Shown here in pieces: positions 274 through 14,334 of a stretch of 64,000 nt of DNA. Every line of letters starts with the position of its first letter. The stretch's first letter is position 1. Source of the DNA: Perkinsus chesapeaki ATCC PRA-425 (lineage: Eukaryota; Protista; Perkinsozoa); contig JAAPAO010000017.1 in the NCBI GenBank assembly GCA_013115145.1, positions 75,440-139,439 of the forward strand. The letters are read 5' to 3'. A program made the position numbers and the translations under genes. Under the pieces are notes generated by a model. It saw nothing but the letters and a program-made list of their open reading frames with translations. It was not told the origin of the DNA and searched no databases.

Positions 274-3200
274 GGACGGACTGGTGCCAAAAGGAGAAAT
301 TCCAGGACAACTTCTGGACAGATTTCCAGACTAAACTGCCCACGGAATTGAAGTCCAAGATAAAGGATTTTAAGAAGTAAGTCGTGGGTTCGATCCCTGG
401 GGAGGGTATTTTATTCAGATGTGATTTCGAGCCAATCAAGAACTTCTTGGATAAACGTAGCGAAGCTAAGAAGGCTCGGACTAAGGAGGAGAAGGAGGCA
501 GAAAAGGAGAAGAAGCAACGGGAGGATCATCCCTATACCCATGTTATAGTGGACGATCTGAGGGAAAGGTAAACCCATGGACAGACGGCGATACTGGACG
601 CTGCCAGAGAAGGAACTTATTCTGGTGTGGGTGTTCGTAATGTTACAGTACGAATTAGTAATTCTCGAAGGTTATAAGAATTTGAGTGGCTGGTATGGGT
701 TCGAGTAGTTTAGACGTCGTTGTGGAGTCGTTGATTATGTGAGTTGAGAATATAATTAATAGGATATATTATACCGGCATTCCAGCTGCTCCTGCTCCTG
801 CTCCTGCTGCTGCTTCCATGGTATCTCAAATGGTATGGTATACAGTACGGGTATTAGTAGTCTGTTGAAGATAGGCTTGGTGATGGTGCGGATCAATTCG
901 TGTCTTGTGATAACTTAACACTCGGTGGTGGTGGTAAATTTTGATGAACGTCAACGGGAAGAATTGTGGAAATCGATTCGATGACAATTTGTGGGAAAAT
1001 CTGCTCTAGGCAAGGCTTTGTTTCGTTGTTTAGAGTTGGCAACTTCCGTGTGGAGCCACCTAATCTCTTCCGAGGTCGAGGAGACCATCCCAAGATGGGC
1101 AAGCTGAAGCAGTACATTATGCCAGAGGATGTCACCGTCAATTGTGCAGCTGACGCTCCGGCGCCGAGAGTAGACTTGGTAGCGAATATGTGAGTGTCAT
1201 GCCCTCGCTCATGCTCAGTGCCCAGTGCCGGGCCATGCCTACCGCGACGTTGTGCACGACCCTGCTGTTACATGGCTGGCGTGGTTCACTGATACTATCA
1301 ATAATCAATTCAAGTAAGAAACGGTAAGATATTCTTTATAGTGCGATTGATCGATGAAGATACGTATTCTTAAACGCTGCGAGTGGATTCAAGGGACAAA
1401 GTGATTGGCTGAAATACGAGAAGGCACGGAAACTAAAGAAGTGAAATAATAAATGGTGGGGTTAGTGTGTTGGAAGGCACGGTTGTTGCTGGCAGGTATA
1501 TTGGAGGTATTAGAGCTGATTATACGAAGAAGATGAAGTCAAGTGATAACGATGAGAAGCAGCTTGGTACGGCAGTGTACCTTATTGATAGGCTGGCATT
1601 GAGGGTAAGGAAGAGGTCGTCAGGAATAACACCTCCAAATGGGATCATTCGCTACCGTAGATCGACTTAACTCGGTTGAGCTCGGTGTTGCGGTAATTGG
1701 TCGGTAAGCCTGGCTTAACTATTCATATCTATTAAGGGGAATCCTGTTAGTGGCATACTGCTGCTGTTCAGGTTGGTAATGAGAAGAACACTGACGAGGA
1801 GGCGGATACTGTGGGCTGCTGTAAGGAATCTCTAATGCCTGCTTTCAACACAATTTACCATCTCAGGCAGCCTGCGAGTAGAGCACATGACATTCGAGCC
1901 TGATAATCAAATCACACTCGATTTCCTCGGCAAGGATTCCATCCGCTATTTCAATACTGTCCCCGTTGATGCGTAGGATTGGCTGGGAGGAGCGGCGAAC
2001 TGTTATTGCCTATGCCAGACTGGTTTATAAAAATCTGAAGTCGCTCACTAAGGGACGGAAGCCGGATGAGATGATATTCTCCATGGATCCCTCCAAGGTC
2101 AATGAGTACTTCAAGCAGTTTATGTCGGATCTCTCAGCGAAGGTTGGCAGGTTGATTCCCATCTGCCCTCGACCGTTGATGTTTCAGGTCTTTCGTACCT
2201 ATAATGCCTCGATTACGCTGGAGCAAGAACTGTGTAAGTAGACAGTTAAAAGGCTTCCTGGTTATCGAGCCGTGTATATATTTTACTTGGCACGTTGATT
2301 ATTCAGTAACCGTATGTACTTGCTCGTATCCTATAGTTACATATACAGCCCCTCACAATGAAATAGAATATTTCGTACTTTCAGTTCTCACTCAATCTTC
2401 AGTGTTGTAGCTTGAAATTCTAAGCAAGAGCAGTAGAATGAGAATCGAAACCGTGACACCAACGTTGTTGCATTCGATCATTTACTAGTTACTGCTATTA
2501 TCTACTAACATGCTTCCTATTGCTCGACGGTATACAGTGGAATCGGGTGGTATGTTAGTGTGGTCAGTGGTGTCTGCAGCAACTCGGTTTGTGTCATAAC
2601 CACGGTTCGGCAACAACATAAGATGCGCTGTACTAGGTTAAGCGCTGCCGTGGTGTCGGTTATTCTAGTTTGAAATATCTCACCATACAGAGAAATCTAT
2701 GCGTCTACCAATAGGCATGTCTCAGGCAAGTTTGATCCGAATGAGCATGATATTAGTGACCCTAGTGAGCTGGTGAAGTTCTATAACGATGCCAATAGAA
2801 GAGTCGCCATTTTGTGTAACCATCAGGTGAGCCACTATTACTTATATGCTGCACACTTGTCTGCTATTTAGAGAGCTCCACCGAAGCAACATGAGGCAGG
2901 AATGGAGAGGCTCAAAAAGAAGCTTAGCGATCAGGAGGTCGCTCGCCATACCGAATTCTTCTCTAATCGTGCCCGTCTTTATTAGGCAGTCCTACGGGGC
3001 CTGGAAGGTCTACGGGACGAAGAGCTTGGCAAGAGCGTCTCGAAGACAGTAAGCATCCCGTAGGAGCGTTGAGAAGAATGCCTGCCCGTTCAGGTTAAAG
3101 ATATCATTGCCGAGAAGAATCTTAAGTTCTCCAACATGGACGCGTTAGTTCGGAAGATTAAATCTCAGACTTTAGCAGGTAGGAATGCATTTCGGGCGAT

Positions 3201-3483
3201 GCTGAGGTGAAGCTGTCGCTTTAGTGGAGCGAACTAAGATTCAAATAGCGGACAAAGAAGACAATAAAACCGTGTCACTGACTACCTCCAAGATCAACTA
3301 TATGGACCCCAGGATATCTGTTGCCTTCTGCAAGTCCCTCGACTGCCCAATAGAGAAGGTGGGTCGACTAGTAAGAGAAAGAGCCTCTGTTGGATATTCG
3401 GCTTCGGTCTTCAGATATTTGCGAAGACTATTCGGAACAAGTTCCCATGGGCGATGCACACAAAGAGCTCGTGGAGGTTTTAG
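274..3483 (+). CDS. TOP1: DNA topoisomerase IB, multi-exon; the 5' exons were not resolved and probably begin at or before the window edge
   Basis: Spliced exons give [98 protein letters not shown] and the catalytic [10 protein letters not shown]. Stop TAG at 3481-3483. Confidence 0.96.
2344..2426 (+). mobile_element. Diverged MITE-like copy inside a TOP1 intron
   Basis: TA followed by cagcccctcacaatgaaatagaatatt...tcactcaatcttcagtgtt...tgaaattctaagca aligns along most of the 47343-47439 element (reverse strand). The right TIR is decayed. Confidence 0.65.
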
Positions 3484-3764
3484 ACAGTTGTTACGTGTCG
3501 TCGGAGATTACCATTGTTCTACTTCGCGGTCCGTTCTGCAAGCACTGCCCCATTGGTTTCTGACACCTCTAGCTGTGCAAGTCTATTGCTAACGTAAAAC
3601 ATTATGTGTTGTGTTGTTGCTTATATTACTAACGGGGACAATTCGTTGGTCTCGTGATGGCGCGGAACCGTGACGCATCCCATCCGATGTTTTGCGTGCT
3701 GGGGCGAGCCCGGGGGCTTCCGACTACATTCATACTTTTAGTAGTCGACTTTTTCCTGACGGAC

Positions 3765-6249
3765 ATGACCAGGGACAGACAGCCTGAACCCCTGAAACTG
3801 TCCGACCTTCGATCGGATCTTATTCGCCAAGAGGAGACTATCATTTTTGCTCTGATAGAAAGAGCCCAGTTCAAGCAGGTAGGGTGCGCCCTAACCACTC
3901 CACAGAGCTATTACCTTTCAGAATCTGTCGAACTATTCCCTATGTAACCAGATTGGTACATGCTCCAAGCTGGACTATTTCCTTACAGAGACCGAGAAGC
4001 TCCATTCTAGGTTCAGGAGATATGAGATGTTAGAAGAGCCCTTCACTAACCCCAAATTCGTATGTTTCATGCCACATTGCCGCCTGAGCCTCGAGCCTTT
4101 GCATATTCAGCTTCCCGCGCCCTTTTTCTCCGAAGCCCACGATGGTCCCCAAAGGATCGTCCCCAACACCATTAACGCCAATAGTCGGCTGAAATCGTAG
4201 GATTCTGAGAGTAGGTCTCGGTAACCAACTGTAGGTTCTACGTTAAGAATGTCATACCATTGATATGTCGGCCTGGAGAGGAGGAGGTGTCAGCGGCCTT
4301 GGGTACTCAACATTACTGTGTGCTGCTGTTGGGTGCAGCTGTCTCGGCTGAATAGGTGCATCGGTGGTTAGGGATGTGACAGCACTACAGGCTATGAGTA
4401 GAAGGATACACTATGGCAAACTGGTTGCTGAGGCCAAATTTCAGGCTAATACTCCACTGTAGGCAGTTCCCGCTCATGTCCTTCCGACAGTGTGAGGATG
4501 ATAAGGCCCCCTGTCGACTATTCAATAATATCTTTTCCTGGTCCATAGTAGCTCTAATGGCTCTTCGGTGAGGCTTCCATATTCGTACCACTAGCGATCA
4601 CCTCCAACTTCAATGCGAATGATGGTGTCCAAGCGAAGTCTGTTTCTTTAGATACTCTCAGTTGATTCGGGCGCAGGACGCTGACGGTCTCATGGATTTG
4701 CTCACGGACTCCGCCGTCGAAGAGAAGCTCCTGCAGAGAGTTCGCGAAAAAGCCCGGGCCTACGGCAGGGATATCCAGAACGGTAAGCTACTGGCTGGTG
4801 CTGGAAGGTATGGCTCTCAGGTGGGTCTGAGGTTGTAGTCGACGATTCTGCGCTGAAGGTAGATCCTGAGAATGTCGTCCTTGCTTACAGAGAGCTCATG
4901 ATACCCCTCACTAAGGAGGTCCAGGTTGGTTCGAGGTATCTTTGCGCATCCGGAAGAATTCGATCCTGCAGGTCGCCTACCTCCTTCGACGTCTAGATTC
5001 TTTGGTCATTGCAGTGACCGCTGGATGGGGAAGAGTGGCAGCTATGGAGTACACCATGGGAGACAGGGGGAGCATCAGTCCGCATGCCTCCGGTCGTGAT
5101 GCCAGTGCCGCTGAGCTCAAAGTCCACGAGTAGGAGGCCAGTGGAAGCTTCTTCGGTGTAATCCTTTTCAGCTCGGTGAAGAGCGTTTTTGATGATGTTG
5201 CTAGCGGCGCCGTTAGCTTCGGTGTGGTCCCCCTAGACAGCAGTGTTACAGGTACGCAGACGTTCAGTTCCGGAGGGGTCATATCATTTCAATGCAGGTG
5301 TCGAAATTCGGACGTTGGAAGCTTTGATGGATAGTCATAGGCAGAATGGAGCCAACCTGGTTATTAGCGACCAGCTGTCGCTGCGCCCCAGGTGCGAAAA
5401 CCATGGCAAGTTGTCGCGTGGTTAGTTGGCTGGTCAGTTACGCTGTTATATCCCATCCAAATGGAGGCAAGCCTGTACCTCTAACAAGAGCATCTGTGGT
5501 TATAACTACTAGCATGGCTTCTGAATACTGTAGAGCTGAAATCACTGCGGTGCCGGGCATCAAGACCAGACTGGTAGACTGCTACTTTGAAGCAGTTGAG
5601 AAGGTACCACAATTCCTGCTACTGACAGCAAGGCCCTCTCCCTCCTCAGCTCATAGAGGCTTTAAAGGACGACAAGAAGGCTGTGGCTATTATCCCGACA
5701 CCTTACCTATATAAAATGATGGAGATGTATGGCCACGAGTTCAAGTCGATCATCATACCCAATTCGGACCTTGGCAACATTAAGCTTCAGTAGATCACGC
5801 TTTTCGCCCCAACAAACAGAACAGTTCTCTCAGATTCGGTATCCTCCGTCGTCCACTGGCATATGGCCCCGCAACTGGCTCGGACCGCACTCTCATTGCT
5901 TTCAATGTCGATCACAGCCATGGTTCCCTGATGACCGCCTTGGACTGCTTTAGAGTATCACAAGTCAATCTGTCAAGTCTTCACTCATTCCCCGCTAGTA
6001 AGATCCCCTCCCGATTAGCCGCTCCAGTCGCCTACCCTCAGGCTCTGGCTTTGATTTCGTTGCCATCGCTGATGGTCATCCTGATGCCGAGGAAACTAGA
6101 CATGCCGTCGAGCTTTTGATGGGTGCCAGAACTGCTGCGGGCACTAAACCGAACTGGGCTAAAGTAAAGTCGCTTCGTGCGCGTGCGTGCAGTCGTTCTT
6201 GCATTCGCAGGTGCTGGGCTGCTTCCATGTCCCGGAGGAGGACCGATGA
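3765..6249 (+). CDS. Eukaryotic-type (ARO7/plant AroQ) chorismate mutase fused to prephenate-dehydratase-like and ACT domains, multi-exon
   Basis: CM motifs: LIRQEETIIFALIERAQF, SRRIHYGKLVAE, LTDSAVEEKLLQRV, LMIPLTKEVQVAYLLRRL. The frame continues into VFDDVASGAVSFGVVPLDSS (PDT-like), TLIAFNVDHSHGSLMTALDCF..VNLSSLHSFP (ACT-like) and terminal VLGCF. Confidence 0.88.
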
Positions 6250-6724
6250 GTGTGTCAGAAGGCGTATCTCTTTTGTTTGTTGTTTGTTGTAAAACTCGAC
6301 GTGTTTCTTATCGTCATGATATTATCCGGTGGTATAACACTAATGATATGAGTTTCATTTTTCACTGAGGCCGGCTCGAGCGTTGTTATTCTCATACCAC
6401 AAAAGAAAACTTGAACAAACTGAAATTACGGTTTTTATCTGTTAATAAATCACAGTGCATGTAAGAAACAGACACTGTCGGGCTTTGTGGGATTCGAATG
6501 GTCTACAAATACAATAGATTAGAACCCTCCCTCAATAATCGGGCCAACACTATAAGTTACGCAACACCCGTAGATATCTCATCTGACAACATCATCATTC
6601 ATGTCCGACCATAAACAGTTTAAGATGGTAAGGGATTAACACGTACACTCAGAAATGAGATGACATTAACAAAATGACGCCCAAAGCCTGCTGCTTCAAA
6701 ATGTCCACCGGACGTTGCGGCGGC

Positions 6725-9700: not shown

Positions 9701-10290
9701 TTTTATAGTCTCTGAAAGATATGTTTGAGGTCGGAAAGAAGCTACGTTGAAACTTACCTTCAAGAAGTTTGATGCAACCAGTGAGAGTCTCATGGTCAGG
9801 CAGATCGAAGTCTATAGAGTAGACTCTCGACATGGTTATCGACAAACTAATAACAACGTCTGAGAAGGGCAACTGCTAACAGCAAGATACCCCTGCATAG
9901 CAGTTCTCGTAACAAATGGCCTCGAATGGGTGGTAGTCAACATAAGACAGTTAGAAGCCTACTGGGGGCTTTCAAGGTTGCTATGAGATCACCAGTACCA
10001 AACAAGGAGAACAATAATTCTCTACCGGAGCGTTTGGAAACTCCTCAGCGCACGAAAAGGTTTTTATTGAAGACGTGATCAGCTTGGAGATGCCGTGGGA
10101 TGTGTAAAGCAAGTAATCCAACATAACCGCATCCCCCTAGCAGGGCTTCAAACAGTTCTGAAGGCTTAGGGACAAGTTTCCCCGTTCTCGAGACGACGTT
10201 CTGGAAAATAATCGGATCTTGCGCTGTCGTGCAACTTGCAGGAAACAACAATTTCGATTGTACCGATGGGAGAGTCATGGGTGGGCTGGA
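6725..10290 (-). CDS. Large multi-exon hypothetical protein (may be more than one gene)
   Basis: Chain of minus-strand open segments bounded by GT/AG signals, e.g. IITERPVMSKDAVITLPRPYCTDLQIYE and PMPLREPDDELDFEDSDWG, with Ser/acidic low-complexity tracts. No family recognised. Confidence 0.4.
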
Positions 10291-10634
10291 GCTCAAAATG
10301 ACAACCAAAAAGAGCCGGTTTCGTTGTGGGGATGTAGATGTTACTCGGAGCAAGGGTAGCGAATCGACCTGTGTCGAATCTTTCCTCGAAGTTCGTCAGT
10401 GTAGGCCTTTACGGTGCTTAGCCTATCGACGCTAGTTATATCGATACTTACAGCTTACATGTATTGTGAATTTCACAATGTGAACCATTATTGGGGATAC
10501 CTTAGGGGTGATTTGGCGGAAATATGGTATTATTAAATTCAGCACTAGAGGAACGGAGGCAATGTTGCGCCACGCTAGATATGTCGTTAAAAAGAGTTGT
10601 CGAGTATCTTACAGTAGTTGAGCTCAGCTTAAAG

Positions 10635-11899
10635 ATGCGTTTCAGCAAAAGGCTCGCTTTGGCGATGCAAGAGGGGACCTTGCCCTACCTCTCTCAGAAG
10701 ACAATAAAGCATCATTTAGTAGGCCTAGAGAAGCTGTCCAAGACCTATTCTAAACAAAATGTAAGGCGGGGGATGATAGTAATATAATTGTTATTAATAG
10801 GAAGTTATGGAAGAGGAGCCTATGGCCTCCTTGATATTTGTTAACACTGAGAGAGCTAGGTAATAGAGGAAAATACGGTATGGCTTGTATAGGTAGGTGT
10901 GGTAGGTATGGTATACCTCAGAGGGATGTTCTTTTAACTGTTGAGGAAATACGGTATCAAGATGGTGAGATGTTTAGTGTTATTGACCGAGATATTGAAT
11001 GTATTATGGGAGCTATAGAGGAGCTAGAGATGGGACTTATGCACGAGGTAATACACAGTGTGGGCGCTATTTTACGGTTTTTCTATCAGATTATGCAGTG
11101 GATATCCAATGCCAATGAAGGGGGGCTCATCCTAACAGAACGACAAGTGGAATGTGCTCCTCAGAAAAGTGGTCAGAAGCTAGCTCGGGCACTGGTAGTG
11201 GTAGATCTGGTTGTATTAGGTTGTGTGCTAGTTCCTCGTATTAGGTTGCTCATCACGTGAAATGCCTTGGTACCGAGGCCGCTTGCTCCTGGGTCGAGTC
11301 CTATATCCGAAGCTACTGCCACTTCCATGATAACCTTACGAAGCTTATGGACTATGTCGATGTTAACCTAGCGGGCTTTAGGAAGCTGCTGAAGAGGCAT
11401 GACAAGAATATCCCCAAGCTGTTCCACGCAAGGCAGACTCCTTTCCTAGGGTAAGGGCAGGAGGAGGAGGGTGGGGTGATGGGTTGATTAGGTTCCAGTC
11501 GATTGTCACCAGGGTCACCATGAAGCTCTTTGTGGTGTCGGTGAAGGTGCATACCTTGCTTAAACAAGCTATCGACGAGATCGACCTCCAGTCACAAAGT
11601 ACAGGCCCGTCGTCTGAGGTGGAGGCCCTCAGAGTTTTATTGGGTAAGCTATCACAGACGGCTCTTAGCTTCATGTGGCGGTTTCAGGGCCAGCACCGGT
11701 CCTAGGTGCAGAGACTGCTATGGTGGCCCATATAAGGTTTCCGAATCTCTTTGAGCCGGAAGTATCTGGATCAGACCCACAGCAACCTCAATACGAGCTG
11801 AGGGTGTGCAGTAGAGACTCGACCCCGGCAGCAGGACAGGAGACGTCGCATCATCATCGACATCACCAAGGTCATGCCCCCGCCGAGGCCTACAACTGA
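10635..11899 (+). CDS. Stand-alone SPX-domain protein, multi-exon
   Basis: N-terminal MRFSK..PYLSQKTIKH and the SPX C-terminal signature LMDYVDVNLAGFRKLLKRHDK. No EXS, MFS or VTC domain follows. Confidence 0.8.
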
Positions 11900-12183
11900 G
11901 AATCGTGGCGCGCAAGATGTTGATTATTATTGCTGCTGTTAAAGAGTAGTGCATGTTTTGGCCGTCTAGTAAGCGTGTAAGCTCTTTCGGGTACGCTACT
12001 ACTACAGGCCGTTGTTGTTGCTGATGCTGCTCCTCCGGGGCAGGCCATGACCTGCTGCTCGGGGCTGGGCCTTAGGAACGTAGCATAGATTCCGCACACT
12101 GCGGCGGATGGAGGCGTCAGTTGTGGTGTTGTTGAGTTCATCGGGTGATTGATTTTATCGGCAGTTTAATCTTCTTCACCAGC

Positions 12184-13724
12184 ATGACCACTACTACTGA
12201 AGACAGCACTGCCCCGGCTAAGGTGACTATTGAGGAGACCGCCAAGGTCACCGTTGAGGAGGGCACTCCTAAGGTGGACCTACCTGAGGGGGCCACTAAG
12301 CCACAGTCTGAGCCTATCGAGGATGATGGCAAAGACCACACTCCCACTGAAGACATGAACCGCCTCGTTCACTTTAATGCTTTGGAGCCTTCTCATGTTG
12401 GCACCATTAAGGACGTGTCAGCTGCTAACAAGCTGATTCAGAGGAAGTACGCTCCCAAGGACTTCCATTGGTCCAAGTCCGCTGAGATTCACAGGATTAG
12501 GAGGAAGCAGATCATTGAAGCGTAGACGCATTCACCGTCTCCATTTACGTAGCTCCTCTCCTCTTCAGCCATCCGGAGATCCTCAAGGTCCAAGGTGCTG
12601 ATAACAAGGGTGCCATCTTTGCCACTTGCACTGTGCTCATCCAGTTCATCATGTGCGTGGTGGTCCGTAACTGGTCCTGGCCATCGGTTATCTTCGCTAC
12701 CTGGGTAAGGTGGTGATGGTGATGTTGTAGTTAGCTTCATCACTTTTCTTCTTGATCAGCTTGTATCCGGCTTTATGGAGCATTCTATTGTTATGGGTGG
12801 TCACGAGCTGTCGCACGATATGTTCTTCAAGACCAGAATCTACAACAGGATATTTTCGTAAGTCATCACAGTACTTCCGTTTCGCGTCGTGTATTGCATA
12901 TATGTGATCTACTCAACCTCATAAATATCTTTATTGTATCATCATTGTCAGGCTCTTCCTTAATCTCCCCGTTGGTGTTGCTATGATGGCCACCTTCAGA
13001 AGGTATCATCTTGATCACCATACATCTCAAGGTGTCCCCGGTGTCGATGTCGATCTGCCCACCAGACTCGAGGCTAACTTGTTCCAGCATAAGTTCGGCA
13101 AGTTCTTCTGGGCTCTCAATCAGCCATTCTTCTATTCGTTGAGGCCCCTCTTTGTGCACCCCCTCCCCATGAACTTCTACGAGCTTGTCAACTGGTTGGT
13201 CCAGATCCCTTTTGATATCATCGTAGTCAAGTACCTCGGATGGAAGTCCTTTTTCTACCTTATCGGTGGTCTCTTCATGGGCTTGAGCATTTTCAACCCC
13301 ATCTCTGGTCACTTCATCGCCGAGCATTATGAGTTTGTGTACGGCCAGGAGACCTACAGCTACTACGGTCCTGCCAACTGGATTGTCTACAACGTTGGGT
13401 AAGTGCTACGCTCCGCCTATCCTTCCATCTTTTACTTTCAGTCTTCATAATGAGCATCATGACTTCCCTAACGTGGCTGGCTTCAATTTGTGGAAGGTGA
13501 AGGCTATTGCTCCCGAATGGTAAGAGGAAGCTTGCTTGTAATTACTGTCATTATATCGTTGCTATAGGTATGATATGCCCAGCTACACCTCCTGGTCCAA
13601 GGTCCTTTATCAGTTCATCACGGGCGAGAATCTTAATTTGTAGGCCACGACTCCACCAGGCTCCTTCTTCCCTTCACCTTCTTCTGTTGTTAGGTACTGC
13701 CGTGTTATGCGTAAGCATGCATAA
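12184..13724 (+). CDS. DEGS1: Sphingolipid delta-4 desaturase, paralog A, multi-exon
   Basis: FHWS..H..RRKQI, HPEI, His boxes HELSH, HLDHH and [28 protein letters not shown]. Final exon NLYCRVMRKHA*. Confidence 0.93.
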
Positions 13725-14334
13725 ATCGGTTTGTTGAGTGTTGACTGTTGTTGTAACTGAAGACAGCTGCTACAGCTTTGTTCATTTTCCCGTGGTTGAT
13801 TCTGTATAGCCCTATTCTACAGGGCAAATGCTAATTATTGTTCCTTATGACGTGTGCTGCCGTAATTAAGGCAGTCTACCATTTATACCTCATAATAATA
13901 ATAATACTACTAACAGTGTATCTTTTTCGAAGAGCTTATGAGGAATATTAATAATGTGTTGAGTTAGTAATCAACAACTGGGAAGGGGGAGTGAGGCAGC
14001 ACTCATCGGCGTTGGGGAGAGAGGCTCATCAACAGCCGAACGTGGCATTTTGCAGCTGCTGTTGATGATTGAAATCAGGTCTGAAATTGCAAAATCAGAG
14101 TCTAGTCCTAAACATCTAAGCTTTGACAACAAGCGCAATAGGTAGTCGATAGTCTCCTCCCTCTCCCGCCGCTCCCGCTCTCTGTAACTGTCTAGATTCA
14201 CGGCTGTATCCGGCTCCTCATGTTGCAGTGTGTTATTGGTCATCGCACAGTATAGTGAGAGGAGGTGGTTGAATATGTTCTACTATGTTAACCTACAGTA
14301 AAGAGTTTAACATCGTTTTACCTCTGGTTTACGA

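Follow-up and report, generated by a model that had tools for sequence, protein, structure and literature searches.

Structure of the fused gene

A 64,000-nucleotide (nt) stretch of the Perkinsus chesapeaki ATCC PRA-425 genome (contig JAAPAO010000017.1, positions 75,440 to 139,439 of the forward strand; hereafter the window) contains a gene in which a eukaryotic-type chorismate mutase (CM) runs into a region related to prephenate dehydratase (PDT) and a terminal ACT-like domain. The gene extends on the + strand from an ATG at window position 3765 to a TGA at 6247-6249 and comprises 15 exons and 14 GT..AG introns, of which 13 are 38-53 nt long and the remaining one 193 nt; no long open reading frame (ORF) crosses 3765-6249. 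Its spliced coding sequence of 1707 nt translates into a protein identical to the public 568-amino acid (aa) entry KAF4677272.1/A0A7J6N075 ("chorismate mutase aro7", Perkinsus chesapeaki), so a fungal source, which the short introns had suggested, was rejected. In searches against Pfam and NCBIfam, this protein exceeds the cut-offs of TIGR01802 (CM_pl-yst; 245.8 bits vs 170.9), Pfam PDT (PF00800, EC 4.2.1.51; 34.2 bits vs a gathering score of 25.2; aa 277-428) and CM_2 (33 bits), and this signal is far above chance expectation. Single exons gave only weak Pfam matches that are uninformative alone (CM_2, E=0.005; PDT, E=0.0013), and an exhaustive HMMER search with exon 13 as query returned KAF4677272.1, two weak matches and nothing else.

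The CM half is encoded by exons 1 to 7 and the beginning of exon 8. Exon 1 (3765-3878, aa 1-38) provides the start codon, the CM N-terminus and the equivalent of yeast Arg16; its donor is conserved in three Perkinsus species, and a loose transcript-contig end reading ...QFK joins at 3922, where exon 2 begins (3922-4059, aa 39-84). Exons 3 (4111-4196) and 4 (4235-4302, with conserved GT..AG sites) are followed by exon 5 (4356-4458), in which family searches, the alignment with yeast Aro7 and the spliced translation place the CM active-site block RRIHYGKLVAEAKF (aa 151-164, 4400-4441). Exon 6 (4652-4782) lies after the 193-nt intron, and exon 7 (4821-4924, ...IPLTKEVQ) is conserved across species. 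Exon 8 (4972-5129) contains, in a single stop-free frame, the CM C-terminus VAYLLRRLD (to 4998), a linker and the first PDT-like strand and helix, and P. olseni and P. marinus share the splice sites that flank it. Because a single exon encodes both the end of CM and the start of PDT, the CM-PDT-ACT protein is a true fusion encoded by one spliced gene, and the original prediction, which described an intact ARO7/plant-type CM running without a stop into PDT and ACT, was right on this point.

The PDT-like region continues, according to the alignment and the spliced translation, through exon 9 (5172-5251), with VVPLDSS (5224-5244) where PDTs have VPIENS; exon 10 (5298-5391); exon 11 (5438-5603), with TTSMASEYC (5505-5531) where PDTs have SHPQALAQC; and exon 12 (5650-5789), which ends in NIKLQ. 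Exon 13 (5834-5997) opens with the F of KLQF and proceeds into the ACT domain (GSDRT, GSLMTAL and HSFP, the last at 5982-5993), which extends through exon 14 (6042-6163, ...FVAIADGH..., conserved across species) and ends in exon 15 (6211-6249) with VLGCFHVPEEDR and the stop codon, as given by the spliced translation. An alternative placement of intron 10 at 5421-5466 was dropped: its sites are not conserved, while those of the deposited intron (5392-5437) are conserved in the three Perkinsus species.

Transcripts and Perkinsus orthologs

In transcript-like contigs from a small public run, compared with positions 3200-6500, five introns are removed, all of them GT..AG. The joints are 4059>4111 (in contigs 100% identical to the gene), 4196>4235, ~4458>4652 (in a transcript ~90% identical), 4782>4821 and 5603>5650, and the contigs span CM exons as well as PDT exons 11-12. 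One contig splices 4059 directly to 4235, omitting the 86-nt exon 3 and causing a frameshift; it would be either a minor splice form without a productive reading frame or an artifact of the assembly. The same run contains a second version of the gene, with ~88-91% identity over 3919-5788 and the same introns removed, whereas the assembly has a single copy; it may stem from a polyploid with divergent haplotypes, or from a close relative present in the sample. A contig of this version covers exon 12, and nearly all its differences there fall at third codon positions.

At their orthologous loci, P. olseni and P. marinus retain every exon and all 14 introns, and every splice site is kept except for two in P. 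marinus (the exon-7 acceptor and the exon-14 donor), which are slightly shifted. Across the three species, identity is 63-83% in exons and ~40% in introns. The P. marinus protein on record (462 aa; GG682453.1 locus) ends at an in-frame TAG after KLQ, but the P. marinus genome has the three ACT exons that follow, exon 13 included, in an intact, conserved and spliceable form; the deposited model is thus under-called, and the protein itself is not truly truncated. Directly upstream of the P. chesapeaki gene, on the same strand, is a topoisomerase I gene (window ~3224-3592 and upstream), and the P. marinus gene is likewise located downstream of TOP1 (annotated Topoisom_I_N, Topoisom_I), making the region syntenic.

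The chorismate mutase half

Residues 10-257 match positions 1-247 of the 247 in TIGR01802, and aa 9-257 align end to end with the structures of yeast Aro7 (E=2e-49). Arg16, Arg157, Lys168, Glu198 and Thr242 of the yeast enzyme (2csm), which together with Glu246 (or Gln) are its catalytic residues, are all conserved in P. chesapeaki; the Glu246 position is Gln, as in all other fusions. A six-frame TIGR01802 search of the 41.7-Mb assembly matches this gene alone, which is single-copy. Judged by its sequence, the CM half is canonical and intact, and it is predicted to be a working enzyme.

The PDT-like and ACT tail

The tail is recognized by Pfam PDT but does not reach the NCBIfam PDT equivalogs (NF008865, 43.8 vs 219 bits; NF008866, 18.6 vs 359 bits). 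AlphaFold2, drawing on 42 homologs, modeled aa 262-568 with a predicted local distance difference test score (pLDDT) of 89.7 and a predicted template modeling score (pTM) of 0.85. Its best Foldseek matches in the PDB are the full-length PDTs 2qmx, 6vh5, 3mwb and 2qmw and the PDT-like protein GqqA, with template modeling (TM) scores of 0.6-0.77 and E-values down to 3e-18. Because a confident model best matches full-length PDT structures, the tail is predicted to retain the two-lobe PDT fold plus ACT. Residues 217-301 of the model (aa 478-562) form the beta-alpha-beta-beta-alpha-beta arrangement of an ACT domain and superpose on the ACT domains of PDTs. Among the ACT residues kept are G476, D478, G491, L493, L497, N506, S512, F521, G527, H528 and G559.

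The catalytic signature is not retained along with the fold. The conserved ENS reads DSS (in VVPLDSS, aa 319-325), SHPQALAQC reads TTSMASEYC, and N-x-TRF reads NIKLQF (aa 457-462, interrupted in the gene by intron 5790-5833). The original prediction had read DSS, NIKLQF and the HSFP of the ACT domain correctly, and the change of SHPQ to TTSM adds to these. Both the Thr and the Arg of TRF are missing in all three Perkinsus species. The tetrapeptide within ISHPN (aa 363-367), 19 residues upstream, was considered as a displaced SHPQ and rejected as a coincidence, since it reads ISQP in P. olseni and ISLP in P. marinus and SHPQALAQC aligns to TTSMASEYC.

As a yardstick, 47 positions were taken, 35 of the catalytic domain and 12 of ACT, at which conservation among 116 canonical PDTs is 90% or more. 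Each canonical PDT retains 37-47 of them, compared with 16-17 in the Perkinsus species. In P. chesapeaki (17/47), 25 of the 35 catalytic-domain positions are replaced and 10 kept, together with 7 of the 12 ACT positions; the near-invariant catalytic-domain set takes in the EN of PIEN, H, SHPQALAQC and DTAG. The TRF triad is reported to be critical for PDT catalysis (PMC10845154, PMC13217925), and a fungal PDT loses its activity when the Thr is replaced by Ala (PMC11980547); the same loss is attributed to Zhang 2000 in PMC10845154. Because these motifs are lost and mutagenesis has been published on other PDTs, the PDT-fold half is probably no longer a canonical prephenate dehydratase and is predicted to be non-catalytic.

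The tail is nonetheless maintained. Among the three Perkinsus species, synonymous divergence (dS) is saturated (>1.5 or not computable), and nonsynonymous divergence (dN) is 0.05-0.11 in CM, 0.11-0.23 in the PDT-like region and 0.03-0.14 in ACT. The tail evolves two to three times more quickly than CM. Of the 36 differences from the ~90% identical transcript, 32 fall at third codon positions, PDT exon 12 included. The substitution pattern shows strong purifying selection on the tail, which is clearly a maintained part of the protein and no decaying remnant.

Distribution of the fusion among protists

A word-index search with KAF4677272.1 identified 496 relatives, and most of the best 120 carry PF01817 and PF00800 on one chain of ~550-600 aa. 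Among these 120 are proteins of P. olseni (82% identity), P. marinus, Chromera, Vitrella, Balamuthia and Arcella and of the oomycetes Phytophthora, Pythium, Peronospora, Bremia, Saprolegnia, Aphanomyces and Achlya. Further fusions occur in many unnamed transcriptome and metagenome proteins, and complete fused ORFs are found among transcriptome-derived proteins of other protists. The same CM-PDT(-ACT) architecture is thus present in dozens of protist lineages, which, as the original prediction had itself allowed, lowers the novelty of what it regarded as an unusual control design. A quick CM-domain tree of 102 rows requires only ~3 changes between fused and stand-alone forms, and for this reason the fusion appears to be old and inherited; Perkinsus lies on a long branch among the fused forms. 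The sequences are already in public databases, unremarked, so the sequence observation itself is not new. A literature search found no description of a eukaryotic-CM/PDT fusion family, of its eroded PDT domain, or of a Perkinsus or oomycete PDT.

The domain order and the eukaryotic type of CM are shared by the fusions of P. olseni, Chromera velia (A0A0G4FZ06), Vitrella, Phytophthora, Pythium, Saprolegnia, Balamuthia mandrillaris and Arcella, the CM domains of which cluster together, and the CM active-site block is invariant in all fusions of the motif table. In contrast, the PDT motifs vary. SHPQ is retained solely in amoebozoan-type fusions, and TRF solely in these and a few others, including one Pythium sequence; Balamuthia and Arcella, unlike Perkinsus, keep both canonical motifs. 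Most non-amoebozoan members have likewise replaced SHPQ and the TRF threonine, the latter motif reading IRF in Peronosporales, VRF or MRF in Saprolegniales, SRW or SRY in chromerids, LQF in Perkinsus, ARC or TRC in one further protist group and NHF in another. Perkinsus is the extreme case and the most eroded, additionally lacking the TRF arginine and the EN pair. Individual fusions of Phytophthora infestans, P. ramorum, Bremia, Plasmopara and Saprolegnia show IRF, VRF or MRF and no SHPQ. At the position of the ACT motif ESRP, chromerid fusions also have xSFP.

A second, canonical PDT in the assembly

The original prediction had suggested a search for another PDT in the genome. Searches with PF00800 and with the Balamuthia ortholog found one besides this gene, on contig C2405, and its motifs are canonical: IPIEN, YSHPQALAQC, NRTR|F (spliced) and LESRP. 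Within ~4 kb on one strand (C2405 ~10000-14200, +), this PDT is accompanied by an arogenate/prephenate dehydrogenase-like gene (TyrA-like; CTHPMFGP...) and a class-I aminotransferase, as a cluster or possibly as one multi-domain gene, with 24-28% guanine plus cytosine (GC) and introns of ~77 nt. From its gene content, the cluster looks like a complete arogenate route. The same three genes lie in the same order beside the same dihydroorotate dehydrogenase (DHODH)-like gene in a 9.4-kb Logan contig of run SRR12548988, at 30-37% GC.

The first 6 kb of C2405 (1-122574) are a retroelement with 52% GC, of which a 93% copy exists on contig C773. At ~6.2 kb, the GC content switches abruptly, with no gap of N, to 17-30%, from where it increases steadily, reaching ~47% by 120 kb. 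Long ORFs rich in Asn, Ile and Tyr (myosin-like, SNF2-like and DHODH-like) are found in the AT-rich part. The contig's far end has a Gag-like ORF, which is single-copy and uninformative as a repeat marker.

Searches of the genome with PF02153 and PF20463 (PDH_N and PDH_C) detected no TyrA, despite the readable TyrA-like gene on C2405, while a control search for chorismate synthase succeeded. It seems that the first-look filter lacks sensitivity where DNA is very AT-rich. Because the TyrA of C2405 was missed, a family search of this genome that finds nothing should be given little weight.

Possible functions of the tail

We consider it slightly better than an even bet that the protein is an active eukaryotic-type CM bearing a non-catalytic PDT/ACT module for sensing or assembly. 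The locus would then be the P. chesapeaki member of an old and widespread protist CM-PDT-ACT family, in which the CM half works as an enzyme and the PDT-fold half, without the TRF triad, SHPQ and EN, would not act as a canonical dehydratase. Selection would keep the tail as a folded non-catalytic module. This module may sense a ligand through the well-conserved ACT domain, and possibly through the old substrate cleft too, and/or it may control CM by forming an oligomer interface. The dehydratase step would be performed by the separate canonical PDT or arogenate dehydratase (ADT), beside the TyrA-like dehydrogenase and the aminotransferase on C2405. The pseudo-enzyme module of the original prediction is in keeping with the lost catalytic signature, the retained PDT and ACT fold, the purifying selection and the canonical PDT elsewhere; the design itself can no longer be called unusual. 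As far as it goes, the pseudo-enzyme idea is plausible for what is a P-protein-like CM-PDT-ACT fusion.

Several observations weigh against this interpretation. The single spliced transcript that had been expected is seen at five introns, but no transcript contig of the public run covers 4907-5528, the fusion exon included. The profile searches and structure prediction that had been proposed matched the CM and PDT families and gave a confident PDT plus ACT fold, but Pfam ACT (PF01842) gives KAF4677272.1 no match at E<=0.1. The ACT effector motifs GALV and ESRP (PMC10845154, PMC13217925, PMC11980547) read GSLM and HSFP (aa 511-514); with Pfam ACT unmatched and both motifs altered, it is uncertain from the sequence whether the tail would bind Phe itself. 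Selection as strong as that on the tail would equally be expected of an active, divergent enzyme. Oomycete fusions, too, lack the TRF threonine, and many oomycetes do not need a supply of Phe to grow; should the fusion be the sole PDT of such prototrophs, the threonine must be dispensable in this subfamily. Finally, it is only probable that the C2405 cluster belongs to Perkinsus. No orthologs of its DHODH-like or PDT genes were found in P. olseni or P. marinus over the length ranges searched, which speaks for contamination, whereas the gap-free GC switch, the smooth GC rise and the retroelement copy on C773 speak against it. Our judgment leans modestly towards a Perkinsus origin.

A broader form of the same idea, which we regard as tentative, is that the PDT domain has long been a pseudo-enzyme serving as a prephenate or aromatic-amino-acid switch on CM, and this across perkinsids, chromerids, oomycetes and several uncultured groups of protists. 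Phe and Tyr would in these lineages come from a separate arogenate-route cluster (ADT/PDT, TyrA and prephenate aminotransferase) resembling that of C2405.

The best surviving alternative, though a rather improbable one, is a bifunctional P-protein-like enzyme, in which the divergent PDT-fold domain dehydrates and decarboxylates prephenate (or arogenate) through other residues, CM and PDT work one after the other on a single chain, and ACT provides feedback. Such an enzyme would have the same pathway logic as bacterial PheA, and it would be expected to keep the fold fully, to remain under strong purifying selection and to score above the Pfam PDT gathering threshold, all of which the tail does. 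It would be forced if the oomycete fusions, also without the TRF Thr, are the only PDT of prototrophic oomycetes. In addition, no TyrA family match was found in contigs of normal GC content and the tail is the sole PDT-like sequence outside C2405, so that prephenate would otherwise be without a consumer; this last point is weak, however, given that the family searches missed the TyrA of C2405. The loss of both Thr and Arg of TRF and the replacement of 25 of the 35 conserved catalytic-domain positions argue against bifunctionality, as do the abolition of activity by the Thr to Ala change in the PDTs tested (PMC11980547; Zhang 2000 as cited in PMC10845154) and the presence of a fully canonical PDT elsewhere in the assembly.

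It is unlikely that the PDT-fold domain, still fused to CM, has acquired a new function, either another reaction on prephenate or an unrelated hydrolysis as in the PDT homolog GqqA. This acylase, itself PDT-like, is one of the tail's best matches in structure (PMC8192741), and conserved Perkinsus-specific residues stand in for the canonical set. However, no new catalytic-looking motif was identified in the tail, and the replacements vary by lineage within SAR (stramenopiles, alveolates and rhizarians), with IRF, SRW, ARC, NHF and LQF, which suggests relaxed constraint and not convergence. GqqA itself retains PDT activity (PMC8192741). An artifact, whether annotation has joined two neighboring genes or a functional CM is followed by a pseudogene in decay, could draw on the transcript gap at 4907-5528 and on the TAG after KLQ in the deposited P. 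marinus model, but it is highly improbable given the shared stop-free exon, the frame and splice sites conserved in three species (P. marinus ACT exons included), a dN far below the saturated dS, and the complete fused ORFs in transcriptome-derived proteins of other protists.

Comparison with known systems and significance

Bacterial PheA, as in Escherichia coli, has the same order of CM, PDT fold and ACT, and the Perkinsus PDT plus ACT model superposes on bacterial PDTs. However, the CM of PheA is the small AroQ type of ~90 aa, whereas that of Perkinsus is the eukaryotic allosteric type of ~257 aa, followed by a tail without TRF and ESRP. The PheA equivalog NF007910 has no match in KAF4677272.1, whereas a bacterial control protein of 746 aa scores 313.8 bits. 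The control protein consists of a short (partial?) CM-like segment, PDT, ACT, CM_2, PDT and ACT with both TRF motifs intact, and is in effect a double P-protein.

Yeast Aro7 and plant CM1 (2csm, 4ppu) align end to end with the Perkinsus CM and share its catalytic residues. Aro7 is a stand-alone enzyme regulated by Tyr and Trp at a site in its own dimer interface, whereas the Perkinsus CM bears a PDT/ACT tail of 310 aa. Ser142 and Thr145, which are part of the yeast effector site, read Ala and Val in the Perkinsus alignment. Enzyme-derived modules that regulate a partner are known elsewhere: HisZ is a dead paralog of histidyl-tRNA synthetase (HisRS) that regulates HisG, and CM domains act as allosteric modules on DAH7P synthase. 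The concept shared with the Perkinsus tail would be that of an enzyme relative without chemistry that senses a metabolite and controls its partner; folds and pathways are unrelated, and the likeness is an analogy only.

CM stands where the routes to Trp and to Phe/Tyr branch apart, and its control is textbook knowledge for yeast, plants and bacteria. To our knowledge, it is essentially unstudied in alveolates and oomycetes. Since the fusion is common among protists, the remaining interest lies in its conserved and probably non-catalytic tail. If the tail is a sensor, it would be a clean natural case of an enzyme domain recycled as a regulator. The reconstruction of Phe and Tyr synthesis from these genomes would also change, since the tail is scored as a PDT in automatic annotation. 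The pathway is absent from animals, which gives the question some interest for the biology of Perkinsus, an alveolate parasite of clams and other shellfish, and of oomycetes. If the lineage-wide reading is true, these major plant and shellfish pathogens would share an undescribed control design at the chorismate branch point.

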